Source of the DNA: Diplonema japonicum
Lineage: Eukaryota > Protista > Euglenozoa: Diplonemea
Reading direction: 5' to 3'
NCBI GenBank assembly: GCA_964019335.1
Contig: OZ025649.1
Location: 936,810 to 1,000,809 of the forward strand
DNA length: 64,000 bases
Below are positions 17,433 to 30,313 of the stretch, in pieces (positions within the stretch are counted from its first letter, which is position 1; every line of letters begins with the position of its first letter). The notes under the pieces are model-generated. The model was not told the DNA's origin, ran no database searches, and saw nothing but the letters and a program-made list of their open reading frames with translations. The translations under genes and the position numbers were made by a program.

Positions 17433-20400
17433 ATGTGCAGCTTCATAGCAGTTGTATTATCTCTTGCTGCTAGAGGCTCCTTCGAGGAACAGAGGCTTAC
17501 CCGCATCTATGCTCTCTCTGAGGAGCATACTGTGGCTTCATTTGAGTGGGATCTTGTAGGCCGACAGTATGCGCCTTCGGCAGGGGGCGATGTACTGAGT
17601 AATGTAAACGCTCTCGAAATGTCTGACGGGAAGAACTTTCTCAATTTGTACAACTACGACTGGAGCAGATGCCGGCAGGGGGATCTCCTGGAGTTTAGGA
17701 TGGCATTCCCTCTGGATACAATACCATCTCTGCATTGGAAGCAGAGCTCTGTGCCCACGTCGTCCTCCCCAGTCGAGGGGTACGAGGCTGTTGATGTTCA
17801 GATGCCTGGCTCTGGTGGCACATCGTTCGTTGGACTCCGCAGGGCAGTGTCTTGGGCTGTATTAGATGGAAGCCGTGGTGGTATTGGCTACCCAGGCCTT
17901 GGGGTGTCGATGTTGTCGGGTCAGTCTCTCCTCCCTGGCCCTTGCCATGCAGCAAATGATTCCACGGCATGGAGGTCGGCCTCCCTTGCGCCGAGTGGCT
18001 GTATCGGTGTGCTTGCAGTTGAGCTTTATGTTAGAAGAAGTACAGCTCAGCAGTACCACGTTGCTGTACGACCGAGTTCTGCATGCCAGTTAGGAAGGTG
18101 GGTGTATGTGACAACGAATAAGGGTCTTGCGAGGATTCCATTCAATACCATGTCTCGTTCTCTGCAGCACCTCACTTCTTCGTGTGACGTACCAGGGTAC
18201 TCAGTTTGGCTCGGGTGCTCGGGTCGCCATGTCGGAGTTTCAGGTGATGCAGTGTCTTGTGTAGTGAGTGACGGCTTGCTCGGGTTTAACCTTACCGAAG
18301 GCAGGGCATACCTAGAATCACATGTATTCCCTGTGGGTGTTGAGGATTTCACCGTCGCGGCGTGGCTCAGGTTTCTCGGAAGCAATTCTACAGGAGGCGC
18401 CACAACTATCATATCTATGGGTGCTCTGCGCGTGCAAGTGGACCACGACACCCCGATGATTGAGTGTATTCTTGATATCAGCACAAACTTCTCGGTTGCA
18501 TACCACACTCAGTGGAGTGTGCTATCTAGTCCACATCACTTTGCTTGTGTAAGGTCAGAATCTGGTACAGTACTGCAGTTGTTCGTGGATGGGGTGCTTG
18601 TTGATTCCCATAGGTCGTTGGTTGCGTTCGCGATCCCTCAGCAAGGTGAGGTGGGTTATGTGGGTTCCGCTTTTGTAAGTGACTTCAGACTCTACAACAG
18701 GGTGGTGCTGGTGGACGAGATGCGTGCGCTAACGTCTTGCGACAAGGGGGGTCCTTCTTCAGGCATCTTGTGCGATGCTGAGAATCAGGTTGTCTACTTT
18801 GGAGTCAGCCAGCAGGCGTTGCCGGGGACGTGTCGTGTTCGGTTCTACGACGTGCTGACAGGCCTGACGCGGGGTGTGTCGTCTTCTTGTCCTCAGTCGT
18901 CAAGCGCGCTGCACGGCATAGGCTTCGTGCGGTCCCTTAGCAAGAGTGGCCGTGATATACTAATGTCTGGCGAAGGGTCTTGGGCGCTTGTTTCCATCAG
19001 CGACAATGCTGACGTTGTTTTTATCAGTGTCGATAGTGCTTATGCGTGCAGCAGTTCTTTGGGTTCTGTATATGCTACTCGGGGTTCTTCCGTAGACGCT
19101 CTGATGTCTAGGTACGGCACCTACTGGCTTCGGGGAGTATACGATGGGCGTGGTGGGTGGCCTGCCGCGTCATGTGCTGCTTCACCTGCTTCCATTTTCA
19201 TTGGCGACCAGTGGGGCGTGCTGCAAGTGGACAGTGTGAGCAAGAGGTCGCTACGAGTCATAGGCTTCGTAGGTGGCGGTTCATCATATTGGAGGCCGCG
19301 GCACGATGGATTGAAGGCAACGGAGGTTCCAGTTGGAGAGGTTACGCACATCAGCATAACTGACATGGGTACGTTAGTCATAGTTGGTGGGGGAGGGATA
19401 TTTGTGTATCATGGAGCAGTACGGCAGGTGAGACACAAGCTTGTTTACGGACAGGTGGGCCTGAGAGCACAGGGTATTCGTGTTCCTGAATGGTCGGTTG
19501 AAAGGAGTAACGTTGCACCGCGTCAGGAGGAGATCATAGCTACAGTGACGACTGCAACGCAACAGGCCTGCATCCGTGAGTGCACCGGGCTGTCGTCGTG
19601 CACTGGCTATGTTTGGTATGCTTCTTCTTCCACGTGCAGCATGGTGAGTACAGTCGATGTACCCCTTATGGAGGCTGGTAGTGGTGACTTTCACAGAAAG
19701 ACCCTGGTGGTGGATTTTCAGAGTGCTGCGCATTTGGATTATAGTAGATTATCAGGCATCTTGGATGTTGTGCCTCATGCAATGTGCGAGCTTCGTGGCT
19801 TTCTTTATGTGGTCGGCGGCAATAGGCTGCTCCGCCTCGACCTCTCCACTCAGTCAATTTCTCATATCAGTGGAAATGGTGAAGCATCTTCCAGGCCTGC
19901 TGCTGATGGCTCTGCAACCGTGCATACAGAGCTGGTGGACGGCCCTATAGTTTGCCACCCCTCTGGGCTGCTCTACATGGGCCAGATGGCACACTCGTGC
20001 GTGCGGTCTTTCAACATCTCTTCCCATGAGCTACGGACAGTTGCAGGGACTTGTGGTGTCACGACGAACACTTCGGCTCCTTCTGGTTGGACATCCTCCT
20101 CCGCCTCAATATCCCCTCCTTCGGGGCTTTCTCTTGATGGAGAGGGCACTTCCCTGTTCATTGCGACTCCGCAGACGTACGTTGTGTGGGAGATGCTTCT
20201 GCAGCAGGGACTCATGAGGATTGTCGCAGGAAATGGTACGCAGCACCCCGCTGGATCTGTGAGCTCTTCTGGCAATGCGACTGACACATCGTTCCTGTTT
20301 CCCATGGCAGTGACTTGGTACGGTGGCATAGATGGGAAGAGCATTTTAATACGGGATTCACGCGTCGGACCTGGCACACTGCTGGACTTGAGCTCCGGTG

Positions 20401-23400
20401 ATGGTTACACAGGCTCATGGATCAGTGGTGATGCTTATGCAGTTGCGCAGCCTGTTTCTAGGAGCGATCTGGCGAAGACGGGTGAAGGCGATTATCCCTC
20501 TGCTAGCGAAGCACATATACCGGGAACATCGAAAGGAGGCATGGTACTTCTAGGCGACACGGTTTACCTGCCAGCATCAAGGTGGCCGTACGGTGTTATG
20601 GCAGTCTCACGGTCATCAGGGGGTGTTGCCCGCCTGCCTGGCTTTGACGACTTATTGGGTGCTACGGTTTCCTCGTCTTCTGACGGCACGTCACTATTTG
20701 TCGGTGGCAGCAGCCACGGGAGCGGCGTCGTGTGGCAGGTTGATGGGCTGCCTTCATCCGCGCTTTCGCTGAACGGTGTGGCTGCGTATCACAATATCTT
20801 CGGGGGGTTTGAGAAAGGGTTCACATTACATCTTAGCCTGCGCTACGATGTGAGCATAGGTAGCGGAAACTGGACGTGTCTCATGAGCTATGATTATGAT
20901 TCCATTGTCTTGTATGTTCAGGAGGATGCCTTCTTCATATCGGTGGAGGGCGACACGGCAGCAGTGCCCGCTTCGCTTGCTGATGGGCTGTGGCACAGGG
21001 TTGCAGTCGGGTGGTCCGTGTCTGGTAGGTGGTTCGTGGATTTAGATGGTGTTAGGACGAAGGGCACCAGCATTGGAGCCGGTACACTTTTCTCTCTGAC
21101 CGGGAGACTGGTCTTTGGGTGCGGAGACACGGTGGACAGGTCCCTTGTGCCCGATGCCAGTCTTGCGGACACCTATGTATCTCTACATGACGTTTCGCTG
21201 CTAAGTGATTACAGCGAGGTTCTATCTCCCGTGCTTGATGTGGGACATTGGTCACTCGATGGCCACGGTAAGGACTCTCTAGGAATGCACCATCTAAGTA
21301 TCGATTCAGGTGCCTTCTTCTCACTTGGCCCTGAGCGCTTGATTCCTCGCTTTACATCTCCTCTCGATATTTCTGACAGAGATGTTGTTGTTCTTGATGG
21401 GGGTGCCTCCTGGTCAGAAGGGGGCCCGTGCTCAAATAGTATTTTGTTGACAGGCGTCTATCAGGGAGCGCACTTAGGGTACGCACCTGTGGCTGATATT
21501 GTGGAGAGTAGGATGTTGTACTTGTCTGCTTGGGTGAGGCCACTAGTCTCAGATAGAAGCAAGCAGCAGGTTATTATATCAGTTGGTGAGATGTCCCTGC
21601 TCCTTACGAGTTCTTTGTTTCCGGCAGCAGCAATGGGAAATGGTATCTGCTCAGGCATCGTAAAGGTGCACGCGGGTGAATGGTCGCTTCTCTCGGCGCG
21701 ATATGATCTTGCATCTCAGATTGTCACTGTGCAGTACAATCGCGACGCGGTAGGTGTATGCCCTTTTACATGTGGCTTAGGCACGCCAGCTCCTGTCATG
21801 GTGGGAATTACGAGTGATAGACTGCATGCATTCAAGGGGCAGATAGCGATGCCAATAGTTGCAGCTGATGACGCTTGCATCAGATGCTCGCAACCCAACC
21901 AGGCAGCTCCTCAGCTCCTCATAGGAGCTGGTGGTACAACTTATTACGACGGGTCAGTGAGGTACAAGGGGTCTCAAATGCAATACACCACGACTGTTAT
22001 AGCGGTAAGCGAAGCAGCAGACTTTTCAATGGGTGCATGGGTCTATCGTCAGAGTGCTACTGGGCCAGTTTTACTGTTCGGTGTTCCTGACAAGGTGCCG
22101 GAGTTTTCAGGAAGGTGGTGTGTAGACGGCTTCGTTGGTGACATGAGCGGCGCTATTGGTACCAACTTCTCTGCTGTAGATCATTTAACTATGCCGCCAG
22201 CGGGTCGCTCAGGGCCAGTTTGTAGTGCTGCAAATTACTTGCTGGCATCTGCATCATGGCCGGCACATGGTTCCGTTTCTGCTTGGGTTCAGTATCTATC
22301 GGAGCCTGCGGTGTGGGCTCAGCCAATTGTGAGTTGGTCGACAGATGATCAAGCATCATACTTTTCTCTAGTTGTGGGCTCCCAGATGCATTCTGATAGC
22401 CTTGAAGGCCAGTGGTGTACAGATAGTCTTGTTGTGACAGATGGCGGGCCGTACAACAGGCGACTGGCTCCACTAGCCGTGGGTTCAGGTGGGTCTCCGT
22501 TTGTTAACCATACAGGTTCTCATTATGCTTGTGTGTTTGACGAGCAGTCTTCTCCTTTGTGGGCAGAAGCCACACCTTCTGGTCATGCTGCCATGCCTCG
22601 TTCTGGCACATATACTACTTGGGTATTCATCGACAGTAGTTTTTCGGGAGACTCGGCGGCCTTCACACTACTAGAAGCAGTGCGACCTCACTATTTAGAT
22701 CCTAACGTCAGGTTGCACGTATCTCATTGCTCGGGTAGCGGCTACTGTTCCCTTTCGCTGAGCGTTAGGCCCCGATCAAGTGCAACAGTTATCCAGGTGT
22801 CATCGTGGCCACATATGGACGTTCCCCTTAACACCTGGGTTCACGTTGCAGCAACCTGGGACGGTGATAATAATAATATGGTGACATTGTACGTGGATGG
22901 CCATGTGGTGAAGGAGGGCACTATCTCGGGAGATGTGCAGGATGCATCTATGCTAGTGATAGGTGGCAGACCCGACAGCGAGGAGAACTTGAAGGGCATG
23001 CTTCATGATGTGCGAATCTACAGATCGTCTCTGAGCCCAGCAGAGATCCAGTCCCTAGCAAGGCGTACAGAAACGACTCTTTCTTACTTGTCATGGGGAG
23101 TGAATGATACAGCGATCAGATGCGTCGACACTACATCTTCTGCAGGAGCCTTTCCAGTCGGTGAGTGGGTTCATGTCACAGCTAGTTGGGGAAGGGAGGG
23201 GTCATGGGTTCATGAGAGGAGCGCTTCCGGCCATGTACGCATGACTCAGTGCAGAGAGGTAGCCAATTCTACGCTTGGCCGCAGCACATTAGATATTATG
23301 AGGCTGGGTCACAAGCTCGCAGGCAGTCTATCTCTAGATACCAAGGCGTACATTTATGATGTGCGACTCGTGGAAGGTAGTATTAGCTTGCAGGACACGG

Positions 23401-26400
23401 ACTGGTTGTTTTCTCAGCCTGATTGGTCACTGAGTGTGAAGCTCATGGCAAGTGGGGTTCCTGTCCTGAGTAGTCAATACCACAGCTGGACATGTACCCA
23501 GGCTGCCGTCCTTCTTGCCACCTGGGTACACATTTCTGTTAACTGGGGACAGGAAGCAGTCACATGGTACTTAAATGGCGAACAGGTGTGCAGGTCAGAC
23601 ACGACGAGCACACCTCCAGCTATGTATGGTACTGGTTATGTAGGAGGGTCTCCTTGGGGGTGGTACTTTGATGGGTATTTAAGCACCCTCTTCGTCACCC
23701 CGCGCTCACAGCATGTGGGCAGTGTTAAGCGGCTGATGCAAGGCTCAGAGGCTGTATCTGCTGACTGCGACCTTTTGTCGTGGTTCCCTTTCGATGATGA
23801 TGCTGATGATGTGTTTCGCATGCATAGCTTCCGGGGGCACTTCGCTTTGAGTTCAGGGCACGGCAATGGGATGAGTTTGATTGCTGAAGCGGACAACACG
23901 CTCTCTTCAGATGATTGGTGGGGCATCAGTGGTGCCCCTGCTGTCTCGTTGTCTATTTGGGTAAGACACAAGGACTCTCTTAAGTCAGGTGGTCTTCCTG
24001 TTTTTCTGGGTTCTGACAGGGAGGATGGACCTAGATGGAGCGAGGGAAGTGGAACAGCACCAGTAAACGAGTGTTTCAGGGAGTCTCGAGTAGTGTTGAG
24101 CTTCTCGTTTGACACTGCACTCGACGCCACTGGGAGAAATCGCAATAAGGTGAGCAGGCAGAGCAACGTTGACATTGTAGCTGGGCGTCACGGCAGTGGG
24201 GTTAGGCTAGCTTCGAACAGTTTCTTGAAGGGTCTTGATCAGGCTGCAGGAGGGAGCAGGGATGCAGGACTCACGGTCATGTTCTGGGTGTATCACAGCA
24301 AGCCGGGCGCGGTACGTACCATGGATGAAAGACGTGCGTTGTATGAGGTGGCGAGAGAAGATGGCGATTCTGGAAGAGCCATTCTCGCATGTCAGTCTGA
24401 TGATGAGAAGTACGTCTACATGGCCTTTGACACCCCAGGAGGTGTTCAAGGGCCTGATAGCAGTGCTAGACACTTTGTCTACAATCAGTGGCAACATGTT
24501 GCAGCTACTATTGACAGCAGTGGAGAAGCATCTGTTTTCAGAGACGGCATTATTGTGTGGTCCGGGAGCGCTGTAAACGCATCTTCGCCGTGGGTGTGGG
24601 GCACCTCATCTACTATTGTAGGACACTACAATAAGGGCTATCGGGTGCAGGAGGGGGTGAGTTGTGGTGATCCGTCAGCTTCTTTTGTGCACCCCATGCC
24701 TGATGGGTCCAACTCCACTTACCTGATAGGTACAGTGCATGAGTGTAAGGAGAGATGTGACGCCTACAGCGAATGCGATGGTTTCGTATACATCTATCCT
24801 GGGGATGAAGCGCCGCCACACAGATGTTATTTCAGAACATCTACTTCTTACTCTGTGCCCGACCCACAGCGCGTGTGTTTTACGAAGGGGCGAGGTGCAT
24901 CGTCTCAGTTTGCCGACTTTGTCATCGATGACCTGGTGGTGCTCGATTATGCTGCGCCACTGGCATGTGTTCAGGAGGCATTCAGTGATTACAGTGCTGC
25001 AAGCCCATGCACAGACACAATCCCCGACGCAGCTGTGTCCATGAAGATCTCTTTTGCTACTGATCCTGGTAACCATCTTATGGCAGTTAGTGATGGCGTT
25101 CCAGTGGCTGCACTAGATGGTGTCACTGTTTTTGATGGGACCGCTTCTCTTTCTGGCATATCCGCGATCACTGCAGTTCAGGGGTGCACTTTGGTTGATA
25201 TGCACGCTATTTTAGGAGGCGAGTCCTACGACGCCCCCGTTATCGATTTAGAGCTTCCTTTATACACAGGTCGGTTGTATTCACTGCGTATTCAGGCAGG
25301 TAACAGCGACACAGTGGATCACGTACTTCGAGTTGATAGTTGGACAGAGGTGATCATTCCAGGTCAGAGCACAAAGCAGTGGTTCAGCGCAATTAGCGTC
25401 GTCACAGCTGACCTCGCGACGTGGAACATCACGTATGCAGGTGAAGGGTGGTTTGGTGGGAATGTTACGGTCTACCAGTTGGAGGTATGTGGTGCTGGCA
25501 CTGAGAACACTACGTGCATGGCGTGGCGATGTACGTGTCAAGGTGCATCTGACTACTTTGGCATCAGCAGTGAGACTGATGGCTGCACTGATGTCATCTC
25601 CATGACGTGGTGGCAGGCGAGCTTGTGCGCAACTTATCCACAGGTCGGCAGGCATCAGGCGTGTTCTTCGCAGAGGCCCTCTTGGAGTATTTCATGGTGG
25701 ATGAAGCCAGAGGGAGACGAGGTACAAGCCATACTTCCTTCAGCTATCGGGCATAATTGTAGTCTTGTGCATGAGGCTGTCAGGTCGTCTGCCCATGTTT
25801 CGCTTGGTGTCTGGCAGTGGTTCTTGTGTAAGAGTGCAGGTGGTCTTGTAATCCACTCTACAGTGGATGGTATCGGGTCTGAAGTGTGGTGGCACGACGG
25901 TGCTCCAGAGTTCCTTGTTGGCTCCTGGTCGCATGTCACGGTGGTGGTTGATGGAACTTCTAGACGGCTCTACAAGGATGGGGCACTCATTCACTCCCAC
26001 AACAGACCCTCTATGCAGCTGCAGTGGCATTCTACAACACAGTTTTTCGTATCGTCCTCAAACAGCAGCAGCCCTCTCCTTGTCCATGATATTTTTGTGG
26101 TACAAGGTTCTTATTGCGATCCTATATACCGCAACCTTGCGATATCAGGGATAGTGCCGTATGCATCACGTGTAGTCCCGTGTCAGCTATCAGCAAGCCG
26201 CCCTATTGTGCAGAACGGGCTGTGGGCTTACTACACTTTCGATGAAGGTTGGACGAGTGGTGGGGGTAGAGTGTTGCATGACAGTTCACGTAACAGGCGG
26301 CACCTGGTGGCTGTACCATCTGACAGTGCTTCGCTTGGTGCCGAGACGCATTCCGGTGCAGTGGCAGGTGCTGGTGGGTCCTACAGGGTTAGTTCTGTTC

Positions 26401-29400
26401 CTTTGCGCCAGGGCTATTCTCCTTCCAGTGGGCAGCTATCAGTTAGTTTTTGGGTAAACGCGCTTTGGACTGGGTACCAAGGTGAGGTACTGAGGAACTC
26501 CGTAACTCGAATTGTTTGTGAGACACGTGCCTGTGACTTGGTATCCGCAGGGTCGGTATTGACTGTCGTGGGCAACGTTTCACAGGACGTATGCAAAGAT
26601 CTGTGCATGAGTGATACTAGGTGCAGGGTGGCGACGTGGACACAGGGACTTGGAAGGATGTGTACTCTTGGTGAGTACTTAACGAGTTCGCCTCGTATCT
26701 TTCGAGAGCCCGTACAAGGGGCTGCCTATGTAAAGAGAGGTGGTGAGATGGTTACCAGTTGTAGAACATCAGGTAAGCGGTGCAACCTGTTGCCGCATTC
26801 AGGACAGGACAGTATTGTCATTTCAGACGTGTCTCTGTCTGAGTGTAGGTCTAAGTGCACCGAGCACAGGTGTCAGGTGGGCCAGTGGTCTGCATCTGTC
26901 TGCACATTATCTCCTTCCATGGCATCCGAGCCTCGGTATAGTAGCGGTGAGGTGGTTACTTTTGAAGCAGATTTGCACCCGTCATTCGGTGCAGTTGTGT
27001 TCAGTACCGGGTGTGAGGGACAAGAGCTACGAGTTGGTACGGCCTTCGGAAAGGTATGCTGGGCTTCAATGGATACCACACAACCAGCAGCTTACGTTGG
27101 GGTTACGAAGTAACAGGTCGGAGGCCAGCAGGGGTGCCGTTCTACGATACGAGGAGTCACTTCTTCAGCACGCCAGGTGGCATCACGTGGTATGTTAACA
27201 TTGGTTACCCATGTACATCATTATATCAGGTCTTTGTGCACCATACGTCACGGGCTTCAATCTTCATTGACGGCAGTTTCATAGAAGCTGAGGATTTCAG
27301 GAACTTGGACTCCTTGTTACCAGGGACGTGGCCGTCTTTAGCTTGGTGCGAAGACGCAGAATGGTTGGTCGGAAGCCCAGAGGTGGAGGTCTTGTTCGAT
27401 GATGTGGCGGTATGGAACAGGGCACTGGAGGACTCGGAGGCTATTGAAGTTTATAGAAGGACTGTGGGGTGGGCAGGGCTGTCACCCTCGGTGTGGCACC
27501 ATATCGTGTGGACCATGGACAGAGGCTTGCAGACTTGGTACGTGGATGGTGTTATGAACAAGACATGTGGCTACATCGGAGGCGGTCGTGTGGTGGGTAA
27601 GGGTTCACTGAGGCTTGGTAGCGGTGGGGCAGGACAGTTGCATGGCAATGTGGATGATCTAAAGCTGTTCTCAAGAGTACTTACGGGTGAGGAGATACAG
27701 AGTCTCGCCCTTGGCAGGGCTGCTGTTTCCGAGAAGAGGAAAACAGCACTTTCCCCGCCGCCTTACGACGTCTCAGATTGGGTTTCTGACCCCCCATCTG
27801 GTGGGAATAATATTCAGGTAGCACATGGTACTTGCTCTGGCTGTTCGAGAGACTGCTCAGACTTGTGTCATGAGTCTCTGTACTCCTTCGATGCGGGTGG
27901 CAAGGTGGTTGTCGATGAGTCAGGCAACGGGAGGCATGCATACTTAGATGGTCTCGAAGTGGGAGCTGGTGTTTTTGGCACCAGTTCTGTGAGGGTATGT
28001 TTATGTCTACCATATTATAAACTTAGGATCGTGGTGGTGGGTCTGTTGTGCTATCTGGTCCTGCCTACAGGGGCCTATGGGGTACGCAGCTCTCGCAGTC
28101 AGCAAAGGTGTCATTCATGGCATGGGTGATGCCTTTAGCAATGGTATATTGTGATTCGTTTTTCTTCTGAACACCTTCAGGACACTGGCACAATTTTATC
28201 GATAAGTCCATCGGGTCACGAAGGAGTAAACAGTTCGCATACACTGTGGCAGGATGGTGGTGCTCTGTGTTCAGGGGTTCACGCGGCGAGCTGTTGTACA
28301 GAAGACATTCTGATACCACAGCAGTGGCAACACATTGCTATGAGCACAGCACTGGACAAGGGGTCTCTCGTCCTTTATCACAACGGTGTTCTGGCTGCAA
28401 GATGCAGGACTCTCGAAGGACTGGTCTCGCTTCCGGCTGATCCGTACGTGTCACTCTTCACCAGCGTGAAGGGCACAGGAGCAGGTTTTCTTGGCAGTCG
28501 GGAGTCTTTTAGCGGAAGTATTGACGATGCGCGTCTCTCTTCTGCTGAGTATTCGGATGATGCAGTGCTACACGTGTACCTTTCTACTTGTGACGACTGT
28601 GGTACGTGTGCTGAGGTGAGCAGAACTGTTCTCTCTCCTTCTGATGACGTAACGCTGTTTGGTGGCCCCGCTGTCGCTTTACGGTCGCGAACCATTAAAT
28701 GTACAAGTGACATCACTTCTGCTGAGGTGCTGATTAGCTCTTTCATACGAGACGGGGCTGTGTCCCTCAGTGTTCCGTTTGTCGGTCCTAGTTGCAGTGT
28801 GTTGTGTAACACGTCATCTGGGGTTCATCTTTTAGGTTGTGGTTTTTATAAGTCTTCCTTGAGCTATGTGGGAGATGGATGGTTTCATTGCGTGGCAAGA
28901 CTCGCATCTCAGAAGAAGGGCAGGGCGACTGTCACCGTTGTGGTGCCCGATACAGTAGTTCTTGGTGCCTTCCAATACTCGGATGCATCATCTTGTGGTG
29001 ATGCTAAGATTAGCTATCCGGCAGAGTTATGTGATCCGCTGTTCCCAGGGAGCAGCCGGTGCTTGCCGGACCTGTGCACCATCGAATCCAACCCTCACAT
29101 CACCGATGTCCATTTCCAGCACGTGAGTCATTTACAGACTGCCGGTACTCATTTACAGATAGTGGCTCTGCCCTCTCTGTTGTCAAGAGGCATCAAGGTT
29201 TTCATCTCAAACATGTTCAATTGTAGTGACGTTGACAGTCATCGTGTTGCTGTTTTCGACACTCGCGGCATTGCAGAGATACCTTCTACTGATGCTGTAT
29301 TTAGCACTACTGATCGGGGTACAGGTTATATATGTGGTCAGGTGTTCCCAATCACTGATCATCATGCTTACGGGGTATTGAAGAGAATGGCCCTTTATCC

Positions 29401-30313
29401 TTGCACGGGCCCGTGCTTGCAGGGCGGTACGTGTGACATCACCTCTGGTACTTGCGTTTGCCCCTTCGGCTTCACAGGCCCTTCTTGCGATAAGATAGTT
29501 GACGGCTGCGCTATTGCCCCTGATGATGCATTCTGTCGTCAAGAAGGGGTTTTCGGTTTCACTTCCGTCTTGTCTATGGGGGGCTTTCCTACAGCCCATG
29601 AGTTATACCGAGTGGACCCTTGCGTCAGCCCTGTGTGCGAGATGGCGGGAGGGTCTTGCCACGCTCCTGGCATATGTGCGTGTCCCGAGGGCTTTCAGCC
29701 GCCGCATTGTCTGGGGTGTGTTGCAGGCAGAACAGGAGTTCTGTGCGATCAGTACTTGTGTACAAGGTACTGCGAGCATGGAGAATGCCGTGTCTCTAGC
29801 AATGGTGTCTCGCAGAGGTGCATCTGTTCAGAAGGCTGGAGGGGAGATGATTGTTCCCGGCCGCACGCGTTTTTCAAAGGCTTGAACGAAAGTGAGAGCA
29901 TTATTGTGTCGGAAGACGGCATGCAGATCACCTCATTGTCTCCCTTGTTGCGAGTGGTAATTGCTTTCCCACTTGACGATGATTTAGTCTTTGACTTTTC
30001 AGCATCTATCAGTGTCGGGTCTAGGGTGGGTCTGTGCAGAGCGGGCAGTCAGTCGGTAGTTGGGGGTGACGCCTCGAGCTGGGGCATCGAGGTACTCAAG
30101 AACGGTACATTACTGGCGTGTACTCATGGCAGCTGTTCAGCGCTCAGTGAGGGGTATGGAGCTAGGACATACACTATCCAGTTGGATACCTCATTTGTGA
30201 TGTCTGTACGTAGTGGGCAGCATGCGATGCATGTGTTCGGTTCTGTTTGTACAGAGCAGGACTGTGTAGGATGTGCATCGCTTTCTAGCGGTGCCTTTAT
30301 TTTGGTTCATTAA
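17433..30313 (+). CDS. Giant (~4,244 aa) secreted multidomain protein: NHL-like beta-propeller, about 11 LamG/pentraxin-like domains, 4 PAN/Apple domains, EGF repeats, C-terminal SPRY-like domain
   Basis: Exons 17433-27053, 27091-27189, 27230-27994, 28027-28143, 28181-30313, joined by four phase-0 GTAT..AG introns that rebuild LamG motifs (WHHV|VFV). Repeated FTxxxWV, WxHVxxxW and DxRxYxxxL motifs; CxxxC..C..C PAN motifs; CxCPxGFTGxxC EGF motifs. Confidence 0.85.

Follow-up and report, generated by a model that had tools for sequence, protein, structure and literature searches.

A probable nest of three LamG domains in a giant protein of the diplonemid Diplonema japonicum

The window analyzed here is a 64,000-nucleotide stretch of Diplonema japonicum contig OZ025649.1 (assembly GCA_964019335.1, positions 936,810 to 1,000,809). 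On its forward strand lies an open reading frame (ORF) of 3226 codons (17433–27113, stop-free inside), in which residue r begins at nucleotide 17430+3r. The 3226-residue protein it encodes has a hydrophobic, signal-like N-terminus. A Pfam scan of the whole protein revealed several Laminin_G_3 matches (PF13385, 178.8 bits in five stretches, above the gathering score), along with PAN_1 and PAN_4 matches of the PAN/Apple type. We focused on a block of this protein, residues ~1496–2095, that lies entirely within the single ORF. The block probably consists of three LamG domains, of the concanavalin-A-like (ConA-like) jelly-roll fold, arranged as A[B[C]B]A, with domain C inside domain B and both inside domain A.

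The block stands out by the order of its motifs. The preliminary description had read three N halves of a LamG domain in a row, followed by three C halves, and we located all six half-domain motifs and the entry motifs where it had placed them, in one uninterrupted ORF. The N-half motifs FSMGAWV, GSVSAWV, and GTYTTWV begin at residues 1531 (nucleotide 22023), 1613 (22269), and 1724 (22602), and the entry motifs GRWCVDG and GQWCTDS start from residues 1560 and 1659. They are followed by WVHVAATWD at residue 1802 (nucleotide 22836) with LHDVRIY at 1857–1863, WVHVTASW at 1912 (23166) with IYDVRLV at 1973–1979, and WVHISVNW at 2031 (23523) with FDGYLSTLFV at 2080–2089. This N,N,N,C,C,C succession proved genuine; it is an unusual one, shared by four diplonemid homologues. 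The absence of introns at the junctions was likewise borne out, since all junctions fall within the continuous ORF.

We divided the block into five pieces, all on the forward strand. The N part of the outer LamG, A_N (21918–22112, residues ~1496–1560), holds strands b2–b5, including FSMGAWV and GPVLLFGV. The N part of the middle LamG, B_N (22113–22406, residues ~1561–1658), holds strands b1–b6 and opens with the entry strand (G)RWCVDG..DMSG, after which come PVCSAA, GSVSAWVQY, QPIVSWS, and SYFSLVVGS. The inner LamG, C (22407–23069, residues ~1659–1879), runs from GQWCTDS to ...LHDVRIYRSSLSPAEIQSLARRT and is the only complete and contiguous LamG of the three. The middle domain resumes as B_C (23070–23420, residues ~1880–1996, strands b7–b13), with LSYLSWGV, TAIRC, WVHVTASW, and, further on, AYIYDVRLV and the tail GSISLQDTDWLF. 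The outer domain resumes as A_C (23421–23717, residues ~1997–2095, strands b6–b13), with WSLSVKLM, GVPVLSSQ, HSWTC, WVHISVNW, and later FDGYLSTLFV.

Domain C was the most readily identified. Scanned alone, it matched Pfam Laminin_G_3 at 78 bits (residues 1722–1873, profile positions 16–151). AlphaFold2 (AF2) modelled it confidently, with a predicted local distance difference test score (pLDDT) of 65–92 over residues ~1720–1879, and the model is a two-sheet jelly-roll LamG fold of about 13 strands. In two VIA fold searches, Z scores reached 16.7–17.4 (root-mean-square deviation 2.7–2.9), with 175 of 194 residues aligned to the CBM40 structure 6er4_A. Jelly rolls of pentraxin, PAPP-A LamG, and clostridial neurotoxin (BoNT) Hc-N were matched as well; the likeness to the pentraxins PTX3 and SAP (Z 14–16) is explained by the shared superfamily. 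Membership in the Pentraxin family (PF00354) was rejected, as its score of 17–22 bits, confined to the C half of domain C, falls under the gathering cut-off of 25. A sequence search of the PDB returned weak LamG matches only.

The pieces surrounding domain C each resemble only part of a LamG. Scored alone against Pfam Laminin_G_3, A_C reached 35.3 bits (cut-off 27.6) over residues ~2018–2086 and profile positions 69–138 only, and B_C gave a weak 13.1 bits over residues ~1899–1920 and positions 68–89 only. Because the N half of LamG is poorly conserved, we built an independent hidden Markov model (HMM) from 400 near-full-length domains of 154 unrelated LamG-rich proteins, and scored the pieces singly in this protein and its four homologues. 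A_N of all five family members and B_N of four matched the N part of the model (positions 20–93), taking in the FTISAWV strand, and the C pieces of all five matched positions 101–201. In this protein, A_N matched positions 33–73 at 8.0 bits, a score reached by none of 300 shuffles, and B_N matched 61–92; in the Diplonema papillatum homologue (P0020), B_N matched 20–93 at 15.4 bits, and B_C of another orthologue (P0014) matched 114–195 at 21 bits. The scores of A_N and B_N equal or exceed those of domain C's own N half, and in nine of ten cases at most one of 300 shuffles per piece reached the real score.

Profile–profile comparison with hhalign agreed with this assignment. Family profiles of B_C (P 7e-7, columns 47–149) and A_C (P 2e-9) aligned to a LamG reference, and the C halves aligned to one another (C_C with A_C, P 1e-10; C_C with B_C, P 1e-8; B_C with A_C, P 5e-5). 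The N pieces aligned to each other at the AWV strand with P of about 0.01–0.02. Judged by their sequences, the two segments of each host correspond to complementary portions of a single LamG profile. The two N pieces together, or the two C pieces together, do not each make a complete LamG, because the same part of the profile is present twice in each.

The spacing of the strands points the same way. The W-x-H-V strands of the block are 110 and 119 residues apart, which leaves no room for an N half between them, and the AWV strands are 82 and 112 residues apart; a complete domain does not fit into distances of this size. Among 704 consecutive LamG pairs from the 154 unrelated proteins, the W-strand spacing never fell below 150 (median 225), and within this comparison shorter spacings were seen in this diplonemid family alone. 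We also counted strands, using DSSP on both AF2 models together with the sequence. Between TWV and WxHV, domain C has four strands (FTLLEAV, VRLHVSHC, YCSLSLSV, and VIQV). Domain B has two of the four before the insert (QPIVSWS and SYFSLVVGS) and two after it (LSYLSWGV and TAIRC), and in domain A the split is one strand ahead of the insert (GPVLLFGV) and three behind it (WSLSVKLM, GVPVLSSQ, and HSWTC). The counts are complementary, with no strand missing or doubled, so that each outer unit, once its halves are joined, has the strands of one LamG. The block also contains three canonical starts (GGTTYYDGS, GRWCVDG..DMSG, and GQWCTDS..DGGP) and then three 'aLs..ei..l' tails, that of C first, that of B next, and that of A last; on this assignment of the motifs, starts followed by tails form the bracket structure ((( ))).

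When 1.84 billion representatives were searched exhaustively with HMMER, four homologues (P0010, P0011, P0014, and P0020) proved to match all 616 residues of the block in a single stretch, at 29–36% identity, and three of them are collinear with the query over nearly the entire protein. P0020 is the D. papillatum protein KAJ9456245.1 (hypothetical protein DIPPA_24367), which has a longer isoform, KAJ9456244.1, carrying the automatic name 'Teneurin-a'. P0011 is a Namystynia karyoxenos transcript (EP01062_P026628), and P0010 and P0014 come from ENA assemblies; word-index protein searches recovered P0010 as the sole family member. The preliminary description had suggested looking for the pattern in other diplonemids, and the N,N,N,C,C,C block is present in all four homologues, with its three N motifs, two entry motifs, and three C halves.

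Conservation extends to individual positions in both flanks. Ten cysteines, which would probably form five disulfides, are identical in four or all five members of the family (1563/1597, 1662/1700, 1766/1772, 1897/1940, and 2021/2053). One pair is common to B_N and C_N (RWC..C and QWC..C), and another, around the W strand, is common to B_C and A_C (IRC..TQC and WTC..QVC). In the homologues, W1536 and V1537 of A_N are invariant, as are R1561, C1563, C1597, W1618, W1628, Q1630, and P1631 of B_N. Indels cluster at the four proposed junctions except the one between C and B_C, which is free of them.

Chance resemblance of motifs, or an assembly artefact, would be another explanation of the order. 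Nothing was found in its favour, and we rejected it as highly improbable on the strength of the shuffle controls, the conservation of the whole 616 residues in four homologues, and the DNA itself, as the whole 1929-nucleotide stretch was found unchanged, gapless, and jointless in contigs from the runs of two studies. These contigs may be the source assembly itself, and none is on record as RNA.

These data are explained most economically by A[B[C]B]A, a reading that is not proven; that the halves of A, and those of B, pair in three dimensions is what we infer from the order and content of the pieces. In the proposed arrangement, domain C would occupy B's b6/b7 hairpin, and B together with C would occupy the b5/b6 hairpin of domain A. 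The gap in B is thus filled by a complete domain, C, and the gap in A would be filled by one as well, provided that B is one domain. The first and last strands of the LamG fold lie side by side, so one LamG can be placed whole into a hairpin loop of a second while the host's strands stay together. Repeated insertion into hairpins would produce three starts followed by three ends. Instead of beads on a string, the outcome would likely be a lectin-like module of three lobes, compact and rigid, with three binding modules fixed in one body.

Several results weigh against the nest. The conservation argument draws on five sequences only. A_N and B_N have no Pfam match by themselves, nor did a scan of residues 1490–1700 give one, and the matches of the N pieces to the independent HMM are weak (0.5–15 bits). 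AF2 was run with alignments of five sequences, in which whole homologues were used and the query ends were smeared; mean pLDDT was 44.9 for residues 1470–2112 and 51.6 for residues 1555–2000 (B[C]B), with the B halves at 40–60. In both runs, A and B stood at pLDDT 25–60, and no contact between the halves of either domain was seen; the fold searches with these models were taken up by domain C. The structure prediction that the preliminary description had proposed thus delivered the inner domain as a complete LamG fold and left the outer two at low confidence.

The preliminary description had also looked to the rejoined halves for a score above that of the separate pieces. Scored with a bacterial LamG HMM for which domain C was the seed, rejoined A reached 36.1 bits against 34.2 + 2.8 for its pieces, and rejoined B reached 9.2 against 10.4 - 1.9, compared with 110.3 against 99.1 + 2.6 for the control, domain C. 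The outer domains thus showed no gain, and crossed pairings did as well as nested ones. The test has low power, since the N half adds only about 9–11 bits even for domain C. In global profile–profile alignment, the nested constructs span the full template (47.3 and 43.5), contiguous A_N+B_N fails (9.3), contiguous B_C+A_C reaches 40.7, and the crossed pairings reach 38.9 and 52.0. Local and global hhalign of all pairings confirmed the profile part of each piece and did not distinguish nested from crossed. The rejoining test neither supports nor refutes nesting, and the case for nesting is carried by the complementarity of the pieces, the spacing, the strand counts, the short linkers, and conservation.

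The low AF2 confidence throughout the region outside C, the lack of a profile-score gain on rejoining, and the global alignment of B_C+A_C to the LamG reference would also fit an intact domain C flanked by half-domain remnants, in which N+N and C+C form pseudo-sandwiches or other beta-rich structures, or are partly disordered. We consider this unlikely. Invariant W, C, G, and D/R positions occur in both flanks across diplonemid genera, indicating that the flanks are under selection as folded units. A_N+B_N has two N motifs, no C motif, and a failing global alignment, and the strands of the paired halves make up one LamG each, without remainder. An alignment of five sequences would be expected to yield low pLDDT. 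Neither AF2 model contains a contiguous complete sandwich in the flanks, an observation that at such confidence counts for neither reading.

Since sequence profiles are blind to pairing, their scores would equally suit two intertwined LamGs around C, made of A_N with B_C and of B_N with A_C. This crossed arrangement seems very improbable to us. The junctions between A_N and B_N and between B_C and A_C are short linkers, and the two ends of a B folded as a single unit would place A_N next to A_C, whereas in the crossed form the end of B_N and the start of A_C would have to meet across both C and B_C. To our knowledge, a crossed or swapped pairing of this kind has no precedent, and none was found in the literature. 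Of the triple nest put forward in the preliminary description, the order of the halves, the complete inner domain, and the inability of N+N and C+C to form full LamGs stood; the packing of the outer halves into two sandwiches was not recovered.

Recursive self-insertion of copies is a plausible candidate for the origin of the nest. When each piece was compared with the whole protein by phmmer, the N halves were not detectably alike at the single-sequence level, which argues against a recent duplication, and no paralogue of the block was found in the window's own genome (62.5 Mb, 132 contigs). When the C-half profiles of the protein's eight LamG units were compared in a matrix, C was the nearest unit to both A (62.2) and B (45.5). 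It is also the nearest to three others, D1, D4, and D5, because C is the most canonical unit, so these scores do not single out local self-duplication. As the junctions lie in a continuous ORF, any intron-based route has left no trace.

The signal-like N-terminus, PAN/Apple domains, many conserved cysteines, and LamG folds, which typically bind carbohydrate or protein, suggest a secreted or surface adhesion/lectin protein. Its function is probably ligand or prey-surface binding, a role proposed because the protein that contains the block also carries PAN/Apple domains.

Other features of the protein and its surroundings were observed alongside the block. Within domain C, the b6/b7 hairpin (22725–22745, residues 1766–1772) is closed by an invariant cysteine pair, HC-SGSGY-C; in domain B, the corresponding hairpin is the proposed host site of domain C. 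Residues ~760–1000 (19700–20450) form a conserved block, with GGHRLLRV and with repeated G-x-G and 'TP..VW' motifs, that is collinear in all homologues. Pfam gave no match for it; in appearance it resembles a region of beta-propeller or NHL-type repeats. Further along, a LamG unit with WQHVAATID (~24450–24900, residues ~2341–2490) appears to carry a PAN/Apple module (CKERCDAYSECDGFVYIY...) ahead of its last strand, so that this protein would have one more LamG with an insert.

By homology, the gene runs on beyond the stop codon at 27113: similarity to both the Namystynia protein and D. papillatum KAJ9456244.1 (4542 aa) continues on the forward strand in another frame (within 27056–30313, from about 27224 to 30307), and an in-frame stop (28127–28129) falls within this match. 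The pattern suggests small introns or alternative 3' ends, with a true product of about 4,200 aa. In the downstream ORF, the stretch 27356–27736 (forward strand) matches the last strand and tail of a LamG (HMM positions 162–201) and, six residues on, a C half (119–208), so that domain ends again stand back to back. At the equivalent place in P0020/P0164 and P0014, the W strands are 96–100 aa apart.

It is an even call whether the whole picture holds, namely a three-level LamG nest of a single family, kept in relatives that include another Diplonema and the hemistasiid Namystynia, in a protein where LamG and PAN modules have repeatedly been inserted into one another. If true, the ConA-like fold would here have its first described case of recursive self-nesting, and the finding would hint at a lineage-typical, intron-independent addition of domains by hairpin insertion. 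Domain insertion usually joins different families, with an insert usually smaller than its host; a conserved LamG-in-LamG-in-LamG would differ on both counts, showing a jelly roll of ~200 residues serving repeatedly as host and guest. The gene is an intron-poor eukaryotic one, for which exon shuffling is not an obvious route to a nest. The block is also a natural test case for structure predictors and domain parsers, as Pfam sees one domain and two half domains here. More broadly, it draws attention to giant lectin-like proteins that form an uncharacterized family in diplonemids, a group of marine protists of very high abundance.

The diplonemid orthologues that share the N,N,N,C,C,C block are annotated just as hypothetical or by an automatic name, and our literature search found no description of nested LamG domains or of this family's architecture. 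The novelty claimed for triple self-nesting in the preliminary description holds for LamG, for which none was found described, and does not extend to nesting as such, since nested and recursive same-family insertions have already been published (PMC13114784).

Tandem LamG/LNS arrays (laminin alpha LG1-5, neurexin LNS1-6, agrin, and bacterial Laminin_G_3 giants) are built from the same domain family, and domain C superposes on their domains at Z 11.6–13.1. Unlike the proposed nest, these arrays are beads on a string. The lectin domain of calnexin/calreticulin (1JHN), which was found in the fold search of domain C (1jhn_A, Z 11.5), is a ConA-like sandwich with the P-domain arm inserted in a loop. 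It, too, tolerates a large loop insert, but that insert is a proline-rich hairpin and not a ConA-like domain.

Nested A1-B1-C-B2-A2 topologies have been published, for example that of ndhH A5GWA1, which that paper gives purely to illustrate the topology (PMC13114784). The bracket topology is the same, and in our case host and insert belong to one family and are similar in size; the paper reports that 65.8% of insertion events join different H-groups, and that inserts have a median of 115 aa compared with 199 for hosts (PMC13114784). Another known case is the SI3 region of the cyanobacterial RNA polymerase beta' subunit (rpoC2), with recursively nested sandwich-barrel-hybrid/HABAS domains up to six levels deep (PMC13114784; PMC11515920), whose inserts are mostly of one hybrid-motif family (PMC13114784). 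SI3 belongs to a bacterial cytoplasmic enzyme and has another fold, whereas the diplonemid block is LamG/ConA-like, of eukaryotic extracellular type, and three levels deep only. The structures of SI3 are solved or confidently predicted, whereas here the two outer levels are proposed from sequence and C alone is modelled confidently. In SI3 and, on the reading favoured here, in the diplonemid block, small beta-rich domains of the same family have been inserted repeatedly, and a run of N parts is followed by a run of C parts in one polypeptide.

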